A stretch of 63,674 nt of DNA, filler included, from Klebsormidium nitens (lineage: Eukaryota > Plantae > Klebsormidiophyceae), in NCBI GenBank assembly GCA_000708835.1. It is 5 parts of 5 records of this genome, joined end to end, with 100 filler letters (N's around TTAATTAATTAA, not from the genome) between each part and the next. Parts side by side here need not be neighbours in the genome. Positions count along the whole stretch, not along the records: positions 30,110 to 42,055 come from DF238110.1; 4 more parts are not named here. One strand, written 5' to 3'. The first letter of the stretch is position 1; each line of letters begins with the position of its first letter. Shown here one piece after another: positions 1-42,055 of the stretch. Position numbers and translations under genes: made by a program. The notes under the pieces are model-generated. The model worked only from the letters and a program-made list of their open reading frames with translations, made no database searches and had not been told where the DNA came from.

Positions 1-1280
1 CTGGGCTTCTCAATGCGCAAGGAAGCGCGCCAAGCAGCAGGCGCCCGGCGCGCCGAAGAAGTGGTGCACGCATTACAACTCCAGTACGCATGATATGGCC
101 GAATGCAAGGCCTTACAGCATGGGGCGCCATCAGCGCCGCCCCTTGCGAACGCTCGTGCCGCGCAGGCCCCGGCCGCTCAGAAGAACGAGCCCAGGGACC
201 CGGCCGAGCCCACACTTGAGGAGCTTCAGGAGCTCTGGGACGCCCACTATGGACGCGTCACAGGATACGGCGCCTGCGTGATGTCAGCGCGCGCCGCAAC
301 CCGAACGGGCAAGCAGCAGCCAGTCACAGTAGGCCAGCCACCTCACGTCAGGCCGCGCCTAAGCTGCGTGCAGTGGCCTTACACGAGAGGCCCCTAAGAA
401 CGAACGACGTCGCGGCCGTCTCGCCGACATGCCGCTGGGCTTTCTGCCCAAGGACTTCATTCGGACTTCCAGTCCGACCAGACCCGAGCCTGCCGAGCCA
501 GCCGAAGCTGAGCAGCGCGCAGAGCCGGATTCCGCCCAGACAGCCGCGCCGGAAGTTACCGCGCTGGCGAAGGGAAAGCAAAAAGCAATTGCACCAGAAG
601 ACGCTGCTAAGAGCGCAGCCCAGGGGACCACCAGAACACGGATTCTGCCTCAGGGCTTTCAAGAGCTGGGCTCCGTCGGACGATCCACGCCGACAGGGAG
701 TCATTTGCGGGCCGACTGCCCCAGTGGACACTGCGCCCGCGCTGCAAGACGCCGACCAGGCACCAGCTGCCGCCGGTCCGCCCCCAGAGCCGGCTGCAGA
801 CAACATTTACGACCCAGAGAACCCCCAAATTGGAGCGCTCCTAGGGAAGCTGCCAGGGGCGTACCGCAGTGACCCGAACGCGGGGTTCCACAGGTCACCT
901 CGGATTGATAACTCCGGCCCGCAGCTTGCCCTCCTAGTGAACGGGCGCGTGGTGCCGAACTTGATTCTGGATTCTGGCGCGGAGGCCGTCATTACAGGCC
1001 CCTCAGGCGCCAAGGCAATGGGGATTACCCTTGACATGCCATTCGCCGCAGAGCGATTGTGATCCGCGATGCAACAGGACAGCTGTTCGGACCGCTTGGA
1101 TCAAACACTTGAGCCGGTCAGCTTCGAGCTGAATCCAGGCACCCCTGACGTAGTCACTGTTATGGCGCACGTGGTGATTGCATCCCACGATCTGCCTGAC
1201 ACACTCAGTCGGGATGAGTGTCATGGGACCGGCCAGCATATGATTCCAAACCCCCGCAAGCAGCGGGTGAAGTATTAGGT
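1..1280 (+). mobile_element. Decayed Ty3/gypsy-type gag C-terminus plus aspartic protease (frameshifted; no RT follows)
   Basis: Zn-knuckle-like WASQC and WCTHYNSSTHDMAEC at 1-110; retropepsin motif LILDSGAEAVITG near 960-1000; a second-half GMSVMG motif near 1210-1230 is reached only by frameshift; stops and frameshifts separate the pieces. Confidence 0.7.
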
Positions 1281-30109: not shown

Positions 30110-30298
30110 CCAACCGTCACATCAACTATCAACAATCTGACCCAAATGTGTGCGCGCGCGACGAATCAGCTGGGTTGTATTGGGGCTGGATTGGGCAGCG
30201 TTCTGAATCCAATTTTCTGAACGAAAGACTGAACGAAATGATGCTCAGATCAGCAAGCAAGCAATTATCGGCGGCACCACCACAAATTAGACGACATC

Positions 30299-31507
30299 AT
30301 GAGTATCGTCAGAGACCAGGTTTTTGCTGGGCCTTGCACCGGTATCGTGCTAGATGCTCTGAATTGGTTGGACGAATTCTGGTCTTGGCAAGGCGCTCGG
30401 CAATCGCCATGGCAGGAGCTTGAAAGACTTGAAAGTAAAGTGAAACGCTTTGTGAATGCGGTCCGGGCTTCTGGCTTTCATGTGGTAGCCGTTGTGGACT
30501 CGGACACCAAGACCGAGGAGGCAGAGAGAAAATGGCATCATCGGCGCAACAGGGAAATGCGAACTGAAGAGAAGAAAATGGTCCTTGCAATCGACTCTTT
30601 CCTATCAGAGGCTCTCCGTAGGAACAGCGTCAGGGTTGTCCGGCCCCTTTCCGCAGATGCGGATGACGTCATTGCCTCACTCTCAGCGGTTGGTGGAGCA
30701 AGCACGTGTGTTTTGAGCAAAGACAGAGACTTCTTCAGGTACAAGCCAGCAGTCAGGGTGTGTGATGGATGGATAATTAAACAGGGGAGGCTGTTTCTGA
30801 GTCCTGCTACATCTCACCGCTCAAAAGCAATACCCAGGGTTGTGGACACATCGTTAGCAGAGACGAGTGTTGACGCTGACAGAGATGGTGAGAATAAGTA
30901 CAACCCTAGCATGCGTGGGGGTTGGATCATCCGCGGCTGTACTAGTTCATCGGACAAGAAGATGGGAAATCTACACAAAATTATCAGGCCCCTGCGAGCA
31001 GCTGTATATGCCAGGTTAGGGGAACAATCTGCCAAAGAGAAAATCCCTGAGTGGAATGAAGAAACGGATAGCGTCCGGTGGGTAGAGACCGTGGTAGCAG
31101 CTGATGCTTCTCTCGACGCTTTGCTCGACGATCCTGAGGCAGCCCTATCATGGATATTAGAACGAGAAGGGCCCGAGTGCGAGGAGCACTGGCGGAGGGT
31201 TGAACGTGCTTTCAACAGATGTGCTTTGGTGGCGGAGCTCTGTGCCACAGCCAGCGGGGGTTCCAAGTCCGCTCTTGATATTCAGAAGCTCTTTTCTGGG
31301 AGCATGCCACCCCTTTCGAAGGCAATGCATCCAACGTCTTCCCTCTTGGAGACGCCGTCGCCAACTCCTCCCCGCCTGCTGGAGACATCTCCTCCGACGT
31401 CATCCTTCTCGGAGAGGGCGCCGCTCTGCACCATGGCATCAGATAGCGCGTACAATGCTCCTACAGATAGGGTTAGGGTTAGGGTTTGTTTCTGTATTAT
31501 TTTGTGA
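30299..31507 (+). CDS. PIN-fold XPG/FEN1/Asteroid-like nuclease, 402 aa
   Basis: Acidic motifs VLDALN, VVDSD, ADADDVIA, VLSKDRDFF. Confidence 0.75.
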   Translation: MSIVRDQVFAGPCTGIVLDALNWLDEFWSWQGARQSPWQELERLESKVKRFVNAVRASGFHVVAVVDSDTKTEEAERKWHHRRNREMRTEEKKMVLAIDSFLSEALRRNSVRVVRPLSADADDVIASLSAVGGASTCVLSKDRDFFRYKPAVRVCDGWIIKQGRLFLSPATSHRSKAIPRVVDTSLAETSVDADRDGENKYNPSMRGGWIIRGCTSSSDKKMGNLHKIIRPLRAAVYARLGEQSAKEKIPEWNEETDSVRWVETVVAADASLDALLDDPEAALSWILEREGPECEEHWRRVERAFNRCALVAELCATASGGSKSALDIQKLFSGSMPPLSKAMHPTSSLLETPSPTPPRLLETSPPTSSFSERAPLCTMASDSAYNAPTDRVRVRVCFCIIL

Positions 31508-31616
31508 CATTCAGGAATTGTTGCCACCGAGCAGTCCGCAGAAGTCATGCGCGGCGTCGCCCACTCTTTGGCACCGGTTGCAGGGGGTGCGCAAACATCC
31601 GTGCCGCGCGTATTGA

Positions 31617-32336
31617 ATGCATGAAACAATATCAGCCCAGTGCAATATGGAACTAGCATGTACGGACTCTGAGTGGGCGCAGATATTGGTCGTTTCAGTA
31701 TCGCCGCGCCCACTCCAAGAATTGCTCACACCACTGTTCCCTGACATGTCCATGGAACGCATCAAACTCATCGACAATGTGTTGCTGGGATGGAGACTGG
31801 ACGATGCCGACGTATATAGGACATGGCGAAACAATGCCGATGAATGCCGTAGGCACGTTCAATCGTTGCACACATGGGGCGACATGTCACCAATAATTCA
31901 GCTCGCCAATCGACTGATCGCGATGTGTCCCAAAACTTCAATGACCCCTTGGATCAAACGTACTAGAAACTGTGGGAAGTACTATGCATGCCGCAACTCA
32001 GCGGGGTCTCTGTTTGCACAGATTCTGGGGCGCGTTTCAAACATCGTCTGTGCATTGTACATCTCGTCTCAGTTTGCAACTCTGCGGAAGAATGCAGTAC
32101 GACAGCAGCAGCTGGGAAACGGCTTTTGCCAATTCGAGGCACCACCTCCCAAACTCTCTCACCAGATGAAGCAAGATGCCATACGATTTGATCTTTCGAT
32201 CCAAGAAACGTTTGCGATGGGTGTAGAGTTTGGGAGCAAAGTGGGGTATTGCGAGACTGCTGCGCAGATGCAATACCTAAACGACCTGTTGAAAACTACT
32301 GAACTCTGGCTCAATGAAGTTGCCTCTACCAATTGA
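31617..32336 (+). CDS. Hypothetical protein, 239 aa
   Basis: Long ATG ORF with ordinary protein composition, co-oriented in a gene-dense segment; no motif recognised. Confidence 0.5.
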   Translation: MHETISAQCNMELACTDSEWAQILVVSVSPRPLQELLTPLFPDMSMERIKLIDNVLLGWRLDDADVYRTWRNNADECRRHVQSLHTWGDMSPIIQLANRLIAMCPKTSMTPWIKRTRNCGKYYACRNSAGSLFAQILGRVSNIVCALYISSQFATLRKNAVRQQQLGNGFCQFEAPPPKLSHQMKQDAIRFDLSIQETFAMGVEFGSKVGYCETAAQMQYLNDLLKTTELWLNEVASTN

Positions 32337-32695
32337 ATTATTTGACAGTCTCGCAATTGAAAACAATTGCTGGATGCTCCATTGCTCTCTAATTTGCCGC
32401 CAGGTGCACTTTGGTCAAGTCCCAAAGGTCCAAATTGCCTCTATACTCTGCGGGAACTCTAAAAATCCAATCGAGTCACAAGGTCCGTCCGATCTAACTA
32501 CTTTCCGGTCAGTCCATATGAACCGTCGATAAGCGGAAAAAACGAGTCACCACATGTAATACATTCACGTGAAACAAATCTAAACACCTTCGTACACACG
32601 TGGTTTCGACCGGCCGTCGCGAGGCATTTAAACGACGAAAACCTATCAAATGCCTCTGTTGGGCGTTCCAACCCACCAGTGTCATGATCTAAAGT

Positions 32696-34155
32696 GTGAG
32701 CAAGATGGCGCCCTTTCGGGTGAAGCATGTCTGGGACATGGTGGAGCTGCGCGGGTTGGCAAAGAGGCTGCCAAAGCCAGAGTGCATGAGCTTTTACGAT
32801 CCAGACGTGGTCAAGCGGCACGTGCCCGGATTGGAGAAGGTTCTGGAGAAGGCGCAGGCATTCAAGAAGCACTATGAGAATGGCAGGACTGAGACCTTCT
32901 TCGTGTATGATACGGAAGAGGGCAAAGTGTATGTGAGGGGGATTTGGGAGGCTAGATTCATGCACTTCCACCACCACATGCCCCGTGTTGCAGAGGATAA
33001 CACCTGCAACTATGAAGACTCTCACACGGCCCGCTTGGAGAGCGCACCCGTGCGCAACAGGGGCAGGAAGAGGAAGAATTCGGTGGTCATCTCGGACTCA
33101 GAGTCAGAGTATGAGGATGCGGTGGAGTTCATGGCGAGGTGTAGCAGGTGCAGCTCCCTGACAGAAGAGAAAACCATGGGGGTTCACGGGGATGTCAAGT
33201 TTTGCAAGGACTGCGTCTTGATCTGCGACCTGTGTCTGGAGAGCGAGCCTCTTCTGACCAACATGAGCGACCAGTGCGGCCATGCTCTGTGCGTCGAATG
33301 TGGGCATGGTCTCGCCAAGGGCATGCAGGAGGTGGGGCAGATTCCAGTCTGCCCTCTGTGCCACCTCGTAGTCCAGGACCGCAGCCTCCTGCCTCAGTTG
33401 GAGTGGAGCGTCCTGAAGGATCTGTGTGGCAAGGATGAGGCCTTGCTCGTGAACATCGACCGTATCATGTGGCGTCAGACGGCTGCAGCCGTGGGAGGGC
33501 GACCCTGTGAGTGCGGTGCGGTCGTCACCGGAGACATCACTGAGGACGACGAGTGCCCCAACTGCGGTGAGCTGCTGCTGGAAACGATGGAGCGGCGCGA
33601 GATGGTGGAGCACGACGCGGCCTTCCAGGAGGGTGCTAAGGCGGCCGGCGTCAGGTTCATCAGGTGCCCGTGTGGTTATGGTAAGCGGTGGACCACATAA
33701 AATCTTAGGTGCAATCAGAGTTGATGAGCTACAATATTGAAGCATCTGTCCAACTGCTACCGAACGGAAAAGTGCGAACGAGACGGCTGTCCTTCTGTGA
33801 GCAAGAGCGCCTTCTATCCAATCTCTTTGGGGATCGCCACCAGGACTTTAGTTGTGGTGGAATTGCCACCTGCTTTTTTGTGTGTGTTAGTTCTGCGACG
33901 AGAAACATAATACGTTTTGCCACTGTAGGTGATTGTTGTTGTTGATCATACGACAGATTTTCCCCCCTCCTTGCAGCGATCGAGAAGAACGGGGGCTGTA
34001 ATCATATTACTTGTACCAGGTGCAACACAGACCTCTGCTACCAGTGTTCCAAAGTTATCAAACACGATGAGGTGTCAGATCACTACAAGTCGGGCATGCC
34101 GTGCAGGCAGTTTGCCACCGCTGCCGCCTGGGACGAGGACGAGGACGAGGATTAG
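32696..34155 (+). CDS. RBR (RING-IBR-RING, Ariadne-like) E3 ubiquitin ligase, 2 exons
   Basis: RING1 CDLC...CGHALCVEC...CPLC; short IBR; intron 33681-33976 (GTAAGC...ttgcAG) gives RCPCGYA-IEKNGGCNHITCTRCNTDLCYQC, an Rcat motif with the catalytic Cys; stop at 34153-34155. Confidence 0.85.
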
Positions 34156-34256
34156 CGTGTAGATACGTAGCTGGCAGTTTGAGTGAGAGGGAGGACGAAC
34201 TGTACATAGGAGAATGGTCCGCTCGATCTGGGCGACCCGATTGTAATGGGGTCTAT

Positions 34257-34643
34257 TCAGTCATCAAAGTGCTCTCTTGGTCGCACCCTCTGCTTCGGTG
34301 GCTTCACTTGATCAATTCCGTGCAGTTCACAATATGGGACGCAGATATCCACCCTGCTGACCACGACGGCTGCTCTCTCGAATGCCCGTTGAACTATTCT
34401 CCAGTCGCATGCTCTGAAAATCTCGTGTTGAATGTGGTAGGCGTCGAGTAGGTGAAACGCAACCCTCTCAGCCATCAATGCATCGACGACGCCGACCAAA
34501 CACTCTATATCGAGAACGAACGCATATCTTCTTTGCACGTACATCCCTGGATTGGTTGAGTTGGTCATCCCCAGTTTCATCACGGTTGAATTAGGGGATT
34601 TTGCGCAATAAAGGAACCCAGATTTGATGGTGTCCGCTTCCAT
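34257..34643 (-). CDS. T5orf172/MUG113 (GIY-YIG-like) domain protein
   Basis: GFLYCAKS...MKLGMT...RY...AERVAFHLL...HEIF pattern. Confidence 0.75.
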   Translation of the reverse strand: MEADTIKSGFLYCAKSPNSTVMKLGMTNSTNPGMYVQRRYAFVLDIECLVGVVDALMAERVAFHLLDAYHIQHEIFRACDWRIVQRAFERAAVVVSRVDICVPYCELHGIDQVKPPKQRVRPREHFDD

Positions 34644-34740
34644 TCCTTTATCTTATGCAGACACATGATGTGTCCGTAAGCTTCAAACGCATTGCATCTT
34701 CTTGGTATCCGAGCATCATACATTTTTCTGAACATACGGA

Positions 34741-35028
34741 ATGAGTAGGTACTACATCGGTCCCTCCACCATACAGGGTCAGGGAATATTTGCTAGGAAA
34801 CCCTTGCCCGCTGGATCTTTCATCGGCGTTGCGATAAGCGGCAAGTCTATCACTCCTGAATTTGGTGCTTACGTAAATCATAGTTATCTTCCCTCTGCTC
34901 ATCTCCGGTCCAGGATGGGTCAGTGGGCGCTATATGCATCTCGCGACTTGGACGAAGACGAAGAAGTGACCGCGGACTACAACCTAGCCCCTCCCTTCAT
35001 CCAGGGGGCGAGAAGCACTTTCGTCTAG
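34741..35028 (+). CDS. Minimal SET-domain methyltransferase (vSET-like), 95 aa
   Basis: STIQGQGIFA, YVNHS, ASRDLDEDEEVTADY. Confidence 0.85.
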   Translation: MSRYYIGPSTIQGQGIFARKPLPAGSFIGVAISGKSITPEFGAYVNHSYLPSAHLRSRMGQWALYASRDLDEDEEVTADYNLAPPFIQGARSTFV

Positions 35029-35561
35029 GCCGCACTGTTCGCTGGAAATGGTATCTCCGAGCTCAGGATGCTGGGATACAGATGAAGCCCCTTGCCCTCT
35101 GGCAACTGTCGCCGCATGGCATCGAGACTCAAACTCATATCGTTTTGCAAACCGTCCATGAAGTATCTCAGCCTCGCTTCTGCGAGCACATCGTTTGGCA
35201 TCCACCTCTGGAGCTGCCAGAGTTTTTTCATGGCCCTGCTCGATTGTTCGAGGGCGTTTACGTACGTTTTTTCGCGCACACGTCTGCTAAAATCGTTCTC
35301 GCATGCCTCGAACTTTTTGATGGCGTCGGTGGCCTTGTCAAAGGATTCTGGCCCTCCAGAGCGCAGGCTAGGCGGGGGCAGTCCGCGGCGTTGGACTTCT
35401 TCCTCAGGAGGTTGCAGGCTGTCTATAAACTTTGGCGCATGATAGAGGAAAATCAGGATGAGAATTGCATGCAGTATAAAGTGCAGCTGAACATTCATCA
35501 GCTTACTTTTTGCTTGCATTTTTTCTGCAAGTATGAGAATGAACGAAACACTACTGGTCAT
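35025..35561 (-). CDS. Hypothetical protein with N-terminal hydrophobic segment
   Basis: 178-aa ORF, FILHAILILIFLY followed by a helical soluble region. Confidence 0.5.
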   Translation of the reverse strand: MTSSVSFILILAEKMQAKSKLMNVQLHFILHAILILIFLYHAPKFIDSLQPPEEEVQRRGLPPPSLRSGGPESFDKATDAIKKFEACENDFSRRVREKTYVNALEQSSRAMKKLWQLQRWMPNDVLAEARLRYFMDGLQNDMSLSLDAMRRQLPEGKGLHLYPSILSSEIPFPANSAA

Positions 35562-35913
35562 AGCTGCAGCGTCGGCAAACTTCTTCTTCCAGTATCAGCT
35601 CTTTGATTACACTAAGAAAGGTACCCCAAGGTATGGAGATTGGCGACGGAAACTGTTTGTTTTGTACTACAGCCTGTCCGCTCTGGTCGCTTCCTACTTT
35701 GCATTCGTATTCTTTCAAACGAACACCCCCCTCTTTCTTCTTTGCGTTCTCGTCGCCGTCTTATCTCTCGTACCTCTGAGTTTTTTTGCAGAGGGACGGG
35801 CCGAATGGGACGCAACGTCGTCACATGATTGGCGCCATAGATTATCCCACGGGGTGGCGTTGTTGAATATGGGGTTGATCATCCTGTCCACGATCATGAA
35901 AGTGAGTGTGTGA
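35533..35913 (+). CDS. Small multi-pass membrane protein, 126 aa
   Basis: About four hydrophobic segments separated by basic residues. Confidence 0.55.
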   Translation: MRMNETLLVIAAASANFFFQYQLFDYTKKGTPRYGDWRRKLFVLYYSLSALVASYFAFVFFQTNTPLFLLCVLVAVLSLVPLSFFAEGRAEWDATSSHDWRHRLSHGVALLNMGLIILSTIMKVSV

Positions 35914-35964
35914 TCGTCATCCTCATCGTCCTAATCGTAGAAAATATATTGGCTTAGTCTAGAC

Positions 35965-37805
35965 ATGCGCCGTTGCAAATGTACTACCGTACGTGGACAG
36001 CGCTGCAAAAATGCAGTGGCAGGAGCGAGGAGTGAATTCTGCCATGTTCACAGACAATGTGCAAATGTCAGCAACGACAAGCAGGGCTGCTTTCAGTGCA
36101 AGTGCATGACGTTGCAGGGGGTTCGATGCCGTAGGTTGGTGCTCTCAGCCGCATCTCTCTGCTACCAACACACGAAACGATGCAGCGTGTTGCTCTCAAA
36201 GATGAGGGCTCCGCGGAAAAAGAGCCCCATCAAACTCCTGGAATGGAAGCCCGTGTCTCCGATTCGACTAGGATGGAAAGAGACGAGAGCATCCCCGATC
36301 AGGCTTCCATGGAAGAAGGAGAGATCTCCATCGCGAATTGGGTGGCGGGAGAATGGATCACGCACGAGTGCAACCAAAGCGGTGAAAGGAAAGAGTCCCC
36401 ATAAACTCCTGGAATGGAAACCCGTGTCTCCGATTAGACTAGGATGGAAAGCGCCGAGAGAATCCCCGATCAGGCTTCCATGGAAGAAGGAGAGATATCC
36501 ATTGCGAATTGGGTGGCGAAGGGATGGATCACCTCCACTCGAATTCGACGACAGGTTCTGGAAGGACCAGATGGCCATACGGAAGGCTCGCATTCTCGAG
36601 GCGTCCAGAGCCAAAGCGGCGTCGGGAGGAAAGAGCCCGCTTAAACTCCTGGAGNNNNNNNNNNNNNNNNNNNNCACTCTTCAAGTGCAAACACGAAAGC
36701 AGTCAACAGTGTGCTAGGTGACTTGGTGGGATCAATCTCGGGGGCTGCAAAAGCGGCAGCAGATAACGCGAAAAGGGCCATCAATCTGGCGTCTACCCCA
36801 ACAGAGTTGAATCATGCGATCTCTGCCAACCGTCATGCCACAGCTGCCCTCGAGGCTGCGACTAACGGACAGAATATGAAGGCGGTCAACCATGTCAAGG
36901 AGACTGAAGCGCATCTGAACGTGGGCAGCCCTCATTCGGATGAGTGCAAACGGCTCCTCACAGAGCTAGGCTTTATGGGGCCCGGCGTGAGCAAAAGGAA
37001 AGGTGCGTCCAGCTTCAGACGCTGGGCTCTGTCTCATCACCCAAAAAGAGGTGGAGATGCGAACCTGTTTGCGAGGGTCAACGCTTGCTATTGGTCCACG
37101 ACCGTGCCTGCGAAGGCGGCGCCGAGATCAAGGAAGAAAGCGTCGGCCGGAATCATAATTCACCATATCAAGGGCTTATACGAGCGCCAGAGAGCCGAGA
37201 ACGAGGCGCGGCACAAGTCCGAGTTGGATGCAAGGGATGCAAAGCTACTGGCAGAGATAGAGCGTCTCAGGCGGGAGAGGCCAGCGCCGGCGCCTCTGGC
37301 AGGAGGTCCTCCGCCGCCGCCTCCTCCTGGTGGTCGAGGAGGTCCTCCACCGCCGCCTCCTCCTGGTGGTCGAGGAGGTCCTCCACCGCCGCCACCACCG
37401 CCTGGTGGTTTTCAGATGGGTGGTGCAGCGGTGGGACCGGTTGCAAAGCTGTTCAAGGACTTGGGGTACTCTGTGCCCGAAGCAAAGAAGCTGGCTGCCG
37501 TGATCAAGGAAAGCGCCCCCTTTAAGGACGTCCCAAGCGAGGAGGAGATCGTGACCGACTATGCACCACAACTCCGCTGGGCGGTAGATTCTCTTGTGTA
37601 CCTGAACAAGGGACTCGTTGCCACGGAGCCCCTCTTTGACAAGAGGTTGGCTGCATACAAGGGGCATTTCTCGAGAGCCAAGGTGACGCAAGCCATTGGG
37701 AACGCTAACGTTGCAAAGGTGCGCGATGGGATGAAGGCATCTTTGCAGAAGGCGCAGCATATGAAAGCACTGCAGGACGCTCTCGCCCGTCGAAGAGTCG
37801 ACTGA
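35965..37805 (+). CDS. Probably one protein across a 20-N gap: two Cys/His Zn modules, basic SP/W repeats, degenerate J-like motif, coiled coil, polyproline-RGG tract
   Basis: C-x-C-x-T-x2-G-x-RC...C-x2-H twice; 171-bp duplication at 36220/36391; the frame of the 36711 ORF is open back to the gap at 36675; RRWALSHHPKRGGD; (GGPPPPPPPGGR) repeats. Confidence 0.7.
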
Positions 37806-37935
37806 AACGCTTTGATCACATCCGGGCGCGCGTACGCCCGCAGTGCGCCGGCGGCCTCCTGCTACAGTCGTCGCACACTGGGCGATGACAGTCGCACAAA
37901 GTCAAGGAAAAACTTTGTCCCATGAGTTGTATCAA

Positions 37936-39054
37936 TCATGCCCGAGCAAAGTTAGGCACCGAGTAGGGTTGAACTAGCTCCACGCTCGACCAGCTGGGTA
38001 TCTGCCCGTACGTACCCTCCGCGCTCGTCCAGTTGGTGTCTGTCCCTATCTCGGGAAGACAGGCTGAGTTCGAATCTTGGACCATTGTAAATGCCTGCAG
38101 TAGTAACTGATCCCGGTCGAACATCATCCCGACAAGGCGGCCTTCCGGAGCCTTCAGCGTGTTTCTCAAACGCACCAACCTATCTCGTAGTCGTTGAGAT
38201 AGCTGCACGGTTGGTCCGTTGTAGACCATAGTGCAAATGCACAGCAGGAGTTGTGAAGCGGCTCCCACGATTAGGTCGTCTTCTTCATTTTCGTCGATAA
38301 TAGCTTGTAAACGCACGATGGTGGTTGCTCTTTGTTCTGTCTGCTCATCGCACCTCATCAGCACGCGCTCTCTGCTTATCTTGCTCACGGCGCGGCTCAC
38401 GGCCAACCAATGAGAAGTCGAACTGATATCCCGCATCTGCGCGACGACGGTGCATATTGTCGTCAATTTGTGCTTGGGATTGTCGCCAACGCAACAGAGC
38501 ACTTCGCCGGCTTGTTGTTCGAAGCGAGGTTGAGACGAACAACGAACGAGAATGCCCACCAGCTGATCTAAATAGGGAGATACGTCGACGGCGGTATGAA
38601 CATTCTTCGGACGTTGCGCACCTGCATCCTTGTCGAGACACTTGGCCAACGTCGCGAGCATCTCAGGGGAGACCGAATGAGTCTCGAGGTGGGCAAGTGC
38701 GATGACGAACGGCCTGATAATTCGTCCCTTGACAAAAGCCTCGTTCGATGACAGGAATGTCGCGGTCGCTCGACTCGAGTTCTCCGCCAAGTATTCCAGA
38801 GCCAACAGAGGTTTTTCGTTTTTCCAAGGGATCCTATGACATAGTTGCAGCACCCTGCGTATCACATCCAGAGAATATCGTCCTTGACGAGTAGGTACGT
38901 CGTGCTGATCAAAGTCTGCATTGAGCTCGATGCTTGCAATATACTGTGTGGTCGCTTTCAGTATTCCACTGGAATGAGCTGCCTCGACCCAAGCTTTGAG
39001 ACACCAAAGCGGCCAGCGTGGTGGCGTACACAGATTCATTTTGTACCATACCAT
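37936..39054 (-). CDS. Hypothetical helical protein, 372 aa
   Basis: Long intronless ATG ORF, Leu/Val-rich helical pattern (possibly ARM-like); no motif confidently recognised. Confidence 0.6.
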   Translation of the reverse strand: MVWYKMNLCTPPRWPLWCLKAWVEAAHSSGILKATTQYIASIELNADFDQHDVPTRQGRYSLDVIRRVLQLCHRIPWKNEKPLLALEYLAENSSRATATFLSSNEAFVKGRIIRPFVIALAHLETHSVSPEMLATLAKCLDKDAGAQRPKNVHTAVDVSPYLDQLVGILVRCSSQPRFEQQAGEVLCCVGDNPKHKLTTICTVVAQMRDISSTSHWLAVSRAVSKISRERVLMRCDEQTEQRATTIVRLQAIIDENEEDDLIVGAASQLLLCICTMVYNGPTVQLSQRLRDRLVRLRNTLKAPEGRLVGMMFDRDQLLLQAFTMVQDSNSACLPEIGTDTNWTSAEGTYGQIPSWSSVELVQPYSVPNFARA

Positions 39055-39172
39055 ATGATTGGCTGAACTCAGTCATGAGATTATCCTACATTATCAGACG
39101 CGCCCCATATCGTGTTGCCGAATGGCGTGCAGAAATCGGGTCAAGAAAAATGGTTGGCATCCTGTAACATGT

Positions 39173-40141
39173 CTACGACTCGCTACTCTCGTCTGCGTAT
39201 TGCCACCCCCAACCGGCTGCAAAGAGCCCGTGGCCTCCTGCTACACTGCCGATGTTGCACGCAGAGATCCCGACGATCTCTGCTGCCTCCGCTATGGTGC
39301 CAAATACGGCCAATTGCTCTCCGGTGATCGGATCCAGCTGGATGACGCTACGATTGGTCGTCTTATTCCTGCCTTGTTCCGTCGGAGTGGCCCAGCGCAG
39401 GTTCTCGACGCGGTTGTCCGCTTTGTCTCCGTTGATGTGGTCCGGAGATGCTTGGAAGATGGAGGGGGGTCGAGGAAGGTCCTCCCGATGACGTCGTGGA
39501 CCCTGAGGTCCCTCAACTTCTTATCGATCGTGGCCCTGAATGCTTTGTAGCCATGCAGGTCTCTGCCGTAGCTCCGTCTCCCCCGCGAGTCTTGGATCCT
39601 ACCGCGGTCGCTCGCCTGGGTCTTTGGAAGCAGGCCCCAGCTGCTGACGGCCTCCAGCCACCTCTCGCCAGGAAGGTCGGCCTGCTCGGCCAGGTGCTCT
39701 GGTGTATATGAAAAACCGTAGTCGCGCCTGATCGTCTCTCCCTTCAGAGACCTTTCGACGAGTCCGTGATTGATTCCGAGCGCTTTGACGGCTGCATTCA
39801 CCGAATCGAACCGGGTCTCGTCTCCGGTGTGTGCATGGCGCGCGATGATGGGAGTTCCGAGGGTGATCCCGCACTTCTTGCCCGAGTCAGGGTTATCCGC
39901 GGCCGTCTTGCGATTGTGATCCGGCCTCGTGAGCTCCTGGAGGTTGGCCCAGTCGTCACCACCACCCTTCTCGATCGGGAGGATGTGGTCGCACTCCATC
40001 GCCTCCCCGATGTCGCGGCCGAGGGAGAGCGACAGGTTGAAGCGGGACCTCTTGACCAACTTCCTGTCAATTTTGATGTAGCTGTAGCCGTCAGGGAGCA
40101 CGGTCCCTTTGAGGACTCTGCCGGACTTGGCACTCCAAACC
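39173..40141 (-). pseudogene. Double HNH-NUMOD homing-type endonuclease, 5'-interrupted by IS607 and frameshifted
   Basis: VWSAKSGRVLKG, ECDHI...DDWANLQEL, RFDSVNAAVKALG; after a frameshift near 39450 the frame reads SPDHINGDKADNRVENLRWAT...VIQLD...FGTIAEAAE...WGWQY and stops at 39173. Confidence 0.85.
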
Positions 40142-40330
40142 GATGGATCATTCACTGAACAGACACGGACATTGATGAATCGCAGGGCGATTCTGTCATT
40201 GTCTGCCAGGCTAAGCATGGCAATATCTACCATGGCTCCATCTTGCAGTCGTCTTTCGACGAATCCGCTTCACGCATAGCGCGAAGGAGGATGTTCCTAG
40301 CACCATTGCAATCCCTGTCCAGGATGGAAG
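40142..40330 (-). ncRNA. Putative omegaRNA scaffold overlapping the Fanzor2 3' end
   Basis: Position between the RuvC-III coding region and the inferred right end; hairpins at 40249-40262 (GAAA loop), 40216-40234 and 40177-40193. Confidence 0.55.
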
Positions 40331-42011
40331 CGCATTGATCACACTGAAGAGTCTTGCTACTGCCCAAGTCCTCCTTCATGTGTCCACACCTTCCACAGGT
40401 CTTGCTTGTGTAGTGCTCAGATACGATTAGTACTATGGCGCCTCGGACAGCGGCTTTGGCTTTCAGCCGCTGCATAAATTTGTAGTGGGATAGAAATGAC
40501 ATCTGACGCACGGTCTTGCTTCCAATCCGCCTGCCGACCCGCTTGACCATCTCGCTGGTCTTGAACTCGGGAAGCAGGATCACCTTGGCCTTCCTTGTCA
40601 AGAAATCGGCTGTCTTGTAATGGAGTTCGTCTCTGAGGTGTGCCAATTTCTTTCTTACCTTGAGGATCCTTAGTCTCACTGCTCTCCTCTTCCGTCTGTG
40701 CTTCTTGATGATCCTCTTCTCAAACGAGATCAGCCTGTCCAGTTGGATGGCCAGTGAGAAGAGACGAGTTGCACAGCCATCTCCAAGCTTGAAGACCTCG
40801 CTAGGACTGTATGCGGTCTGGAAGGTCCGAATACCAGGGTCGAGCGAGATCACGGACTCCTTCACCTCATTAATTAAGGAACGCTCACCTTGTCCAATTG
40901 CTTCCGGGGTAGGCTTCTGATATGGTATGATAAGATAGTACCGCGCTCCATCGAACTGGATCTTGCAATCCTTGTTGATCTCACCTATGGTCCCGACTGT
41001 CTCGAACTCCCAAGGGCAGTAGGTCCCATAGATGATCAGAGTGCGCTTACCTCTCACCTTGATGGCCTTCTTGTCGACACCCAAACACCATCCTCGCCTG
41101 TCCTCCTTCTTCCTGGCTCTGAAACCCATGCGGAAATGAGTGATGTTCCCCTGTTTCAGATTCGTGAAGCAAGCCTTTGCATTCTTGGCAGCTTCAAATA
41201 CTGCAGCTGCCCTGACATTCTTGGGAGTCTTCAGAAGGAACGACGCATGGGAATTGACTTCGACTGGGGTGATGAGATCGCGAAGGTACATCTTGTTGTA
41301 GCTTGCAGTCTCGTTCATCAAGAACACCGCTTTATTGTAGCTATACCGAGCTGCATGCCTCCAGTCATTGAGGATCCGCTTCTGATGCTTCTTCGGTAGC
41401 AGCCTCACCTTGCGCGTCCTTATGAGCTTGGTCTCCCCTTCCTCCTCGTCCTCGCCCTCCTCCTCTGGTGTATCGTCTTCTACCATTCCATCTACAACTG
41501 AACACCTGAATGACTGCAAGCACGTCCTCTGCCATTTCTGCTTCTGGAGACTTATCGTCTTGTTGGAGAACCACGAGCTTGACACCGTGTCTCTCGAAGA
41601 TCCATGCAAGTAGATCGAATCCGAAACGACACAGTCTGTCTTTAGAGGCAACCACAATCTCCTGTACAAGCCCTCTCTCGCTCTGTTCCAGAAGGGATAG
41701 AAGTCCTTTCCTCTTGAAGTTAAGGCCGGATCCAACGTCGCTAACAACTGTGTGTCCGGGATATTGGTCAAGCAGATGCTTCTCCTGGCGGCAAAGGTCA
41801 TTCTTCTGTTTGTGACTGGACACCCTGACGTAGATGTAGGAGGTGCGCTCACAGTTTGGGTCGAGGCTGCTGAGGTCATATATCCGCTTGCCTCCGGGGC
41901 TTCGGTCAACCTTGATCTTGCCGGCGGCCTCCCATCTGATGAGGGTCCTGGTGCAGACGCTGAAATGCTTGGCTGCCTGAGACAATCTGACATAGCCCAT
42001 ACACGTGACAT
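40227..42011 (-). CDS. tnpB: TnpB/Fanzor2 RNA-guided nuclease, up to 594 aa
   Basis: RTRKVRLLP, HAARYSYNKAV, ISLDPGIRTF (RuvC-I D), ILLPEFKTSEM (RuvC-II E), TSKTCGRC...CDQC Zn finger, DRDCNGARNI (RuvC-III D). Confidence 0.93.
   Translation of the reverse strand: MSRVWAMSDCLRQPSISASAPGPSSDGRPPARSRLTEAPEASGYMTSAASTQTVSAPPTSTSGCPVTNRRMTFAARRSICLTNIPDTQLLATLDPALTSRGKDFYPFWNRAREGLYRRLWLPLKTDCVVSDSIYLHGSSRDTVSSSWFSNKTISLQKQKWQRTCLQSFRCSVVDGMVEDDTPEEEGEDEEEGETKLIRTRKVRLLPKKHQKRILNDWRHAARYSYNKAVFLMNETASYNKMYLRDLITPVEVNSHASFLLKTPKNVRAAAVFEAAKNAKACFTNLKQGNITHFRMGFRARKKEDRRGWCLGVDKKAIKVRGKRTLIIYGTYCPWEFETVGTIGEINKDCKIQFDGARYYLIIPYQKPTPEAIGQGERSLINEVKESVISLDPGIRTFQTAYSPSEVFKLGDGCATRLFSLAIQLDRLISFEKRIIKKHRRKRRAVRLRILKVRKKLAHLRDELHYKTADFLTRKAKVILLPEFKTSEMVKRVGRRIGSKTVRQMSFLSHYKFMQRLKAKAAVRGAIVLIVSEHYTSKTCGRCGHMKEDLGSSKTLQCDQCASILDRDCNGARNILLRAMREADSSKDDCKMEPW
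41365..42000 (-). CDS. tnpA: IS607 serine recombinase TnpA, 211 aa
   Basis: N-terminal MerR-like HTH (TRTLIRWEAAGKI...GGKRIY), YVRVSSHKQKNDL, DVGSGLNFKRKGL, DRLCRFGF, DVLAVIQVFSCR. Confidence 0.95.
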   Translation of the reverse strand: MGYVRLSQAAKHFSVCTRTLIRWEAAGKIKVDRSPGGKRIYDLSSLDPNCERTSYIYVRVSSHKQKNDLCRQEKHLLDQYPGHTVVSDVGSGLNFKRKGLLSLLEQSERGLVQEIVVASKDRLCRFGFDLLAWIFERHGVKLVVLQQDDKSPEAEMAEDVLAVIQVFSCRWNGRRRYTRGGGRGRGGRGDQAHKDAQGEAATEEASEADPQ

Positions 42012-42055
42012 TTGCTGAGAAAATAAAGACTGAGATTTGTACGCGCTTGTCCGCG

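Follow-up and report, generated by a model that had tools for sequence, protein, structure and literature searches.

Several systems already described come close to the locus reported here. In mimivirus Fanzor2 (ApmFz2, L79), residues 1-53 are a disordered nuclear localisation signal (NLS) and residues 53-130 a structured N-terminal domain (NTD), of which one part, RuvC-R (65-91), completes the RuvC fold, with N82 and S83 touching the omega-RNA pseudoknot, and another, the thumb (109-130), clasps target DNA (PMC11832414). For cyanobacterial 'pro-Fanzor' elements, Yoon et al. 2023 (PMC10711439) reported that TnpA and TnpB are co-conserved; an overlap or extension was not reported. A partial tnpA/tnpB overlap in IS607 elements (PMC9956272) and the Fanzor2 NTD as a structure are therefore already on record. 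Here we describe an IS607-family element which, by its sequence, is a member of the pro-Fanzor/Fanzor2 clade in a giant-virus-like contig, and in which tnpA lies completely inside the Fanzor2 open reading frame (ORF). It sits at the end of one part (record DF238110.1, positions 30,110 to 42,055) of the window, i.e., the whole analysed stretch of 63,674 nucleotides (nt), filler included, from Klebsormidium nitens assembly GCA_000708835.1.

Our main finding is that the 3' part of this tnpA gene is truly dual coding: tnpA codons ~96-211 also encode Fanzor residues ~102-215, and both frames are under purifying selection. We consider it probable that this dual-coded NTD is combined, in giant viruses, with a Fanzor frame that is open to the tnpA start, a pattern best read as twin-AUG initiation on one transcript. 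The features on which the argument turns are as follows (aa, amino acids; pLDDT, predicted local distance difference test).

41365..42000, minus strand: tnpA, an IS607-type serine recombinase of 211 aa (ORF, translation and Pfam)
40227..42011, minus strand: the longest Fanzor2 ORF, 594 codons plus stop, with the whole of tnpA inside it in the +1 frame (ORF, translation and Pfam)
42009..42011, minus strand: AUG1, in the Fanzor frame, 11 nt 5' of the tnpA AUG, with C at -3 and T at +4
41991..41993, minus strand: AUG3, in the Fanzor frame (M7), 7 nt 3' of the tnpA AUG, with G at -3
41709..42011, minus strand: 5' leader of the long ORF, Fanzor aa 1-101 (pLDDT, stop counts and synonymous rate)
41427..41708, minus strand: dual-coding core, matching the Fanzor2 NTD, aa 102-195, with an acidic linker at aa ~158-190 (stops, codon lock, synonymous suppression and homology)
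41688-41696, minus strand: motif PFW
41646-41657, minus strand: motif LWLP
41568-41576, minus strand: motif SWF
41484..41486, minus strand: M176 (MVEDD), the start that prokaryotic-style annotation would pick, giving a protein without the NTD
40230..41426, minus strand: canonical TnpB core (WED, REC, RuvC and Zn finger), aa 196-594 (phmmer to 9b0l_P residues 131-511; ISDra2 TnpB alignment)

The element has the IS607 gene order, with tnpB 3' of tnpA on the same strand; its right end is put at ~40138, where homology among 7 copies stops, and alignment with relatives places the end of the contig at about the left end of the insertion sequence (IS), which is lost at the contig edge, 42055. TnpA matches PF00376 (MerR helix-turn-helix, HTH) at aa 7-41 and PF00239 (Resolvase) at aa 55-175 (E=1.4e-19), and the long ORF matches PF12323 (HTH_OrfB) at aa 198-229, PF01385 (OrfB_IS605) at aa 384-476 and PF07282 (Cas12f1-like TNB) at aa 509-574. 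The Fanzor frame is offset by +1 from tnpA, the two ATGs are 11 nt apart, and the tnpA ATG (AUG2) has T at -3 and G at +4. ORF coordinates, translations and Pfam matches thus confirm what the initial annotation had read here, namely a nested tnpA, ATGs 11 nt apart and a Fanzor frame without a stop across tnpA, and its description of the AUG contexts (C at -3 and T at +4 for the first, G at +4 for the second) was also correct. The frame is stop-free 5' of 42011 as well, up to the edge of the piece at 42055.

An open frame of this length is rarely obtained by chance from the TnpA protein. When tnpA was shuffled synonymously, i.e., with the TnpA protein fixed, the Fanzor frame stayed free of stops in 0.3% of shuffles that drew on the codons of tnpA itself and in 0.08% of those that drew on the codon usage of neighbouring genes. 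Shuffling gives an expectation of 4-5 stops in the Fanzor frame across tnpA, and the third frame holds 13.

Relatives were collected so that the same region could be compared across the family. A protein word search returned a 548-aa protein (P0001, 91% identity) and a 586-aa protein (P0002, 70%), both with the long frame kept, along with many 550-620-aa proteins on ~2-kb contigs and Klebsormidium nitens gene models; a single-protein query of viral contigs returned no relatives. Six close loci were taken (L001, L002 and L163-L166), and alignment-based scans added more distant ones, 160 from metagenomes and IMG/VR and 80 from bacterial genomes, mostly cyanobacteria. This bacterial set corresponds to the 'pro-Fanzor' clade of Yoon et al. 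(PMC10711439). The TnpB frame is at the +1 offset of tnpA in 117 of the 118 dereplicated loci with a usable tnpA.

Stops and codon positions were counted in 116 related IS607 loci. Over tnpA, stops in the TnpB frame are depleted about fourfold overall, and this is seen in every source: 32 observed vs 149 expected in bacterial genomes, 62 vs 181 in IMG/VR, 66 vs 257 in metagenomes and 1 vs 26 in close relatives. The third frame, which serves as a control, is not depleted (1182 stops vs 1241 expected). The depletion depends strongly on position. Over tnpA codons 0-49 stops occur at the chance rate (145 vs ~149 expected), over codons 50-89 there are 15 vs 105 expected, and over codons 90-219 there is 1 vs ~355 expected, the sole one being in L166.

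Synonymous differences in tnpA follow the same course. Scaled to the non-overlapping TnpB core, they are ~1.0 at codons 1-65, 0.62-0.73 at codons 101-120 and 131-155, and 0.46-0.67 at codons 181-210. Within the clade of the window's own element, the synonymous-difference fraction is 0.12-0.22 in tnpA codons 96-155, compared with 0.51-0.57 in the Fanzor core and 0.43-0.56 in tnpA codons 1-50; for this clade test, L163 values at tnpA codons >=96 were discarded because its internal stop makes codon mapping unreliable. Suppression is confined to codons ~96-155 and 181-211, with none at codons 1-50.

Individual codons show what is being preserved. In 105 of 112 loci, TnpA Leu104 is written as CTG or TTG, so that the Fanzor frame reads Trp108, and TnpA codon 102 may be Thr, Ser or Ala but is always xCC, which gives Pro106. 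Likewise, Val143 as GTG and Val144 as GTT give Trp147-Phe148. These residues belong to a conserved Fanzor-frame motif, P[FY]W ... LWLP.TD ... SWFS, which bacterial and viral members have alike.

In the Fanzor frame, amino-acid selection is limited to the last ~115 codons, on the 3' side of the overlap. An alternative view, in which the 175-residue extension as a whole would be selected as a unit, was considered and rejected, as its first ~100 residues have stops at the chance level, a baseline synonymous rate and no predicted structure. The initial annotation had looked to conservation of the open frame and to suppressed synonymous change in tnpA across IS607 loci as checks on the nested frame. 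For the open frame, the expectation holds over tnpA codons 90-219 but not over codons 0-49, where stops fall at the chance rate family-wide; for synonymous change, it holds at codons ~96-155 and 181-211 but not at codons 1-50.

The dual-coded segment has a structural counterpart. By phmmer, the protein aligns from its residue 196 onwards with PDB 9B0L, mimivirus Fanzor2, from residue 131, and a profile built from 110 extended sequences matches 9b0l residues 77-510, with SWF aligned with N82-S83-W84-Y85. We modelled the 594-aa protein with AlphaFold2, which gives pLDDT <50 for residues 1-101, structured elements at 102-157 (pLDDT 65-83 at aa 102-125 and ~68 at aa 139-157), a low-confidence acidic linker at 158-187, and a confident core. 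When this model was compared with VIA-align, 9b0l_P was the top match (Z 27.8, 436 residues, model 104..584 on chain 53..518), model residues 104-194 being placed against chain residues 53-130; ISDra2 TnpB aligns only from model residue 194. Profile and predicted structure together show Fanzor2 aa ~102-195 to be an NTD equivalent to ApmFz2 residues 53-130 (RuvC-R plus thumb). The suggestion that the FYPFWN...LWLPLKTDC...SWFS segment is a Fanzor2 N-terminal extension is therefore borne out by stops, synonymous suppression and codon lock as well as by the 9B0L profile and structure.

The domain also occurs without the overlap. In 23 TnpB/Fanzor2 loci with no upstream tnpA, SWF is kept in 13, most of which also keep P[FY]W, and in these stand-alone ORFs a Met lies 5-35 residues 5' of the motifs. 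The stand-alone set includes Blastocatellia, Dehalococcoidia and Chloroflexota genomes and giant-virus contigs. Because the motifs are kept in TnpB genes that have no tnpA, they mark a real protein domain that is found beyond eukaryotic Fanzor2.

The nuclease to which this NTD is attached appears catalytically complete. Its RuvC-I Asp lies in a DPG motif (LDPG), the relocated RuvC-II Glu (Ealt) in SEHYTSKTC, and the RuvC-III Asp in DRDCNG, with codons read at the following positions.

40839-40841, minus strand: D391
40416-40418, minus strand: E532
40311-40313, minus strand: D567

These align with ApmFz2 D324/E467/D501 (triad from PMC11832414), so the triad is intact and of the rearranged type, in agreement with the initial annotation, which had called all three RuvC acidic residues intact. 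The three positions are invariant or >90% conserved in the 110 sequences.

The overlap is older than was first thought. The long overlap and its motifs recur in cyanobacterial pro-Fanzor IS607 elements, and comparison of their sequences shows that dual coding is old and common to these elements. Since the same domain is found in bacterial pro-Fanzor IS607 elements and in stand-alone TnpB, the NTD predates the move to eukaryotes. The overlap as a eukaryote-specific invention was therefore rejected, and with it goes the proposal in the initial annotation that it arose as a eukaryotic conversion of a bacterial two-gene operon. The same annotation had suggested a domain born by overprinting. A real dual-coded domain is indeed present, and overprinting would be the likelier direction of origin, because the distribution of the NTD is restricted whereas the serine-recombinase fold is universal, but the domain is older than had been proposed. 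As a tentative scenario, which we would rate somewhat below even, the NTD may have arisen de novo by overprinting of an IS607 serine-recombinase gene, after which, in eukaryotic viruses, selection would have extended the nuclease frame to the tnpA start, so that one capped twin-AUG mRNA could yield both proteins.

How the Fanzor2 protein is initiated is a question for the 5' part of the overlap. Here, Fanzor residues 1-101 form an unconserved leader that is predicted to be disordered, and the leader's synonymous rate is that of the Fanzor core; we infer that its sequence is not selected, only its openness. There is no AUG between M70 (41804) and M176, so an NTD-containing Fanzor2 must start at 41804 or 5' of it, where the further Mets are M45 (41879), M7 (AUG3) and M1 (AUG1). 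AUG1 is shared only with L002, L166 and L165, and the weak first AUG (C at -3, T at +4) occurs in the window and L002. AUG3 is made by the TnpA Tyr3 (TAT) and Val4 (GTN) codons and is found in all 7 close relatives.

Among giant-virus loci, 11 of 12 (L166 being the addition to 11) have a Fanzor-frame ATG at -26..+7 of the tnpA ATG with the frame open onward, compared with 11 of 32 bacterial loci (Fisher p=0.0015). The position of this ATG varies among the giant-virus loci (-11, -5, +4 and +7), and in the TnpB tree the trait fills clades holding giant-virus and low-GC metagenome contigs. On these sequence comparisons, a fully nested frame with twin AUGs is a giant-virus-associated pattern. In a separate observation on the bacterial side, many pro-Fanzor elements (cyanobacterial loci L171, L176, L179, L184, L196, L202, L215, L243 and L244) have a TnpB-frame stop at +58..60 of tnpA; an ATG comes next, at +67 or +76, and from there the frame has no stop until tnpB ends. 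Such an ATG could be the bacterial TnpB start, ~150 residues 5' of the annotated one.

With the frame kept open to the tnpA start and a Fanzor AUG a few nt from the tnpA AUG, one 5' transcript is the most economical arrangement. On such a transcript, ribosomes would choose among closely spaced AUGs: those starting at AUG1 or AUG3 would make Fanzor2 preceded by a disordered leader that is disposable, and those starting at AUG2 would make TnpA. Leaky scanning from the AUG pair is a plausible mechanism and is consistent with the giant-virus pattern. A competing explanation accepts the dual-coding NTD but treats full nesting as incidental: Fanzor2 would have its own transcript and start at M70 (41804) or M45 (41879), and the 42011 ATG and the first ~45-70 open codons would be functionless. 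Much of the evidence above suits it, i.e., the chance-rate stops in tnpA codons 0-49 family-wide, a leader that is without amino-acid constraint and predicted to be disordered, and stand-alone homologues that start just 5-35 aa 5' of the PFW motif. In addition, the single-locus chance of open first 90 codons is 0.08 for the window. However, nine of nine giant-virus lineages are open, nearly all with a Fanzor ATG beside the tnpA ATG, and M70 is missing in L001, L164 and L163, where upstream ATGs occur only in the first ~17 codons or at +7 (in L001, the only one is at +7 from the tnpA ATG). In these nine lineages no stop occurs in tnpA codons 4-90, and the product of the single-locus probabilities is 1e-7.1, a value that is suggestive and not formal, as the lineages are treated as independent (which they are not fully) and host is taken from the contig label; the corresponding bacterial count is 14 of 32 loci stop-free, vs 7.1 expected. 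We therefore judge incidental nesting to be unlikely, though it is the most serious competitor to twin-AUG initiation.

Several further points count against twin-AUG initiation and should be set beside it. In L001, L164 and L163, the first AUG is that of tnpA, its context is strong (A at -3, G at +4) and the Fanzor AUG follows 7 nt later, so the 'weak first AUG' picture does not generalise to these loci, and simple context-driven leaky scanning cannot choose between the AUGs there. The +7 ATG is itself partly a by-product of the conserved TnpA Tyr-Val. Giant viruses usually have one promoter per gene, which makes an internal promoter for an M70 or M45 start possible, and loci were labelled 'giant virus' from the names and size of their contigs and from the genes nearby. 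Finally, the initial annotation had named stops in close homologues, in this frame within tnpA, as evidence that would tell against the nested reading: L166 (93% identity) has TGG>TAA at Trp161 of the Fanzor frame, its tnpA reading through its own stop, and in L165 a deletion of 8 nt breaks the frame and cuts the leader off from Fanzor, but the other intact relatives are open.

Two other explanations can be dealt with using the same data. If TnpA sequence and codon usage had by themselves left the long frame open, Fanzor2 would be a canonical ~420-aa TnpB beginning at M176 (41486), with everything upstream non-coding. Gene callers did pick this start in some relatives (P0004, by the Joint Genome Institute, JGI, in L166; P0011 at the equivalent Met), and the Pfam TnpB models begin at aa ~198. 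This explanation is already contradicted, and we give it almost no weight, as stops are depleted ~350-fold in codons 90-219 in this frame alone, the codons used keep the Fanzor-frame residues even at sites where TnpA differs between loci, the upstream part is homologous, in sequence and in structure, to a domain resolved by experiment, the motifs are kept where tnpA is absent, and several relatives have no Met at the canonical TnpB start position. Equally improbable, in our view, is a TnpA-Fanzor2 fusion made by programmed +1 frameshifting, or by splicing in eukaryotic genomes, which would join the TnpA HTH to the NTD. In its favour, the frame opens after the HTH-coding part in most loci, the K. 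nitens models P0005 and P0014 join the segments, and P0022 is an in-frame fusion. Against this, no conserved slippery or shift site was seen, although none was searched for, the K. nitens models look like intron-prediction artefacts, and stand-alone genes and the expressed mimivirus protein begin with their own Met. Twin-AUG initiation on one transcript is the reading we prefer.

One close relative separates the two frames. L163 (61% identity; L163:2371-4269) has an in-frame stop inside tnpA, while the Fanzor frame through the same DNA is open, and it has no ATG near the canonical TnpB start. In this natural example, the nuclease frame seems to have survived the transposase frame.

The genomic setting is as follows. 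Genes next to the close loci include EsV_1_7_cys, DUF5764 and DUF5901, which makes the setting giant-virus-like; the window's own neighbours are mostly without assignment. Copies of ~70% identity are present in the Klebsormidium nitens genome, which suggests an endogenous viral element or real residence in a eukaryote, i.e., this charophyte. Four K. nitens proteins (P0005, P0007, P0008 and P0014) are gene models that join TnpA and Fanzor segments via predicted introns and are probably annotation artefacts to which the overlap of the two genes gave rise. In P0022, an ORF of 487 aa, the TnpA frame continues directly into the Fanzor frame. In the sequencing run that is the likely source, 41508-41751 (the conserved tnpA core) has a contig depth 2-3x that of its flanks, with divergent pieces present, which suggests that the assembly broke on several related copies.

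At the other end of the element, conservation continues past the Fanzor stop into a further feature.

40138..40300, minus strand: conserved structured 3' region over the Fanzor stop, a putative omega-RNA scaffold end and IS right end

The 7 close copies remain homologous for ~90 nt beyond the stop, to ~40138, and 40138-40300 is nearly invariant even between 60%-identical copies. For this ~160-nt region, RNAalifold gives 33 pairs, 4 with compensatory changes; the fold has a hairpin with a compensatory UA/CG change and a long-range GAUGG/CCAUC pairing. The region matches no Rfam family. It is a candidate for the end of the omega-RNA scaffold together with the right end of the IS.

Beside it is a 313-aa HNH-endonuclease ORF (39292-40233, minus strand; Pfam HNH at aa 77-111). 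Its ATG lies inside the IS right end, it overlaps the Fanzor stop by 7 nt, and its first ~32 codons are element sequence common to copies at other sites. The IS therefore immediately adjoins the 5' end of the HNH gene or lies within it, and the true HNH start is probably further downstream.

These results have practical consequences, because Fanzor2 and its bacterial relatives are under development as compact genome editors. Annotation from the canonical TnpB Met strips off a domain that, in the sole solved structure, completes RuvC and grips omega-RNA and DNA. An ORF reaching into tnpA thus changes which proteins to clone and test, cyanobacterial pro-Fanzors included. If overprinting is its true origin, this functional domain of ~100 residues, written over an ancient recombinase gene in a second frame, would offer a clear example of gene birth that can be dated. 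The overlap also physically couples transposase and nuclease, and it may explain their reported co-conservation. The giant-virus-specific extension of the frame to twin AUGs offers a testable model of the adaptation of a prokaryotic operon to cap-dependent translation.

For twin-AUG expression, the nearest parallel is turnip yellow mosaic virus, in which p69 and p206 have AUGs 7 nt apart on a bicistronic viral mRNA and expression from one mRNA has been demonstrated. The likeness lies in two long overlapping ORFs with 5' AUGs 7-11 nt apart; unlike that case, one-mRNA expression at our locus is an extrapolation, and its element is a DNA-virus-borne transposon. For the overlap, the nearest are IS607/IS605 elements with 'partially overlapping' orfA/orfB (PMC9956272), which likewise have tnpA 5' of tnpB on the same strand with a coding overlap. 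Those overlaps are a structural variant without an assigned function, whereas the one described here is ~350-640 nt long, encodes a defined domain and shows dual-frame selection. In the Fanzor2, pro-Fanzor and IS607 literature examined, an NTD within tnpA, an NTD in pro-Fanzors, nesting and adjacent AUGs are not described, which is not proof that they are unpublished.

The cyanobacterial pro-Fanzor IS607 TnpBs (PMC10711439) share with our locus the DPG motif, the alternative Glu, an upstream IS607 TnpA and the same relative frame, and in them 510-690 nt of tnpA are free of stops in the TnpB frame, with P[FY]W / WLP / SWF kept. They differ in being only 30-36% identical and in that most are closed by a stop at +58..60 (or +1..3), with the first ATG at +67 or +76; they have no need of a cap-proximal AUG. 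Mimivirus Fanzor2 (ApmFz2, L79; 9B0L; PMC11832414) has the same overall plan, i.e., a disordered leader, an NTD made of RuvC-R and thumb, a WED/REC/RuvC/Zn-finger core and a rearranged triad. It is ~22% identical, and its leader is a basic NLS, whereas ours is rich in Ser, Thr and Pro. The ApmFz2 paper (PMC11832414) calls the NTD unique to Fanzor2 and does not mention tnpA or an overlap; here, the NTD lies inside tnpA and is found in bacterial relatives as well.

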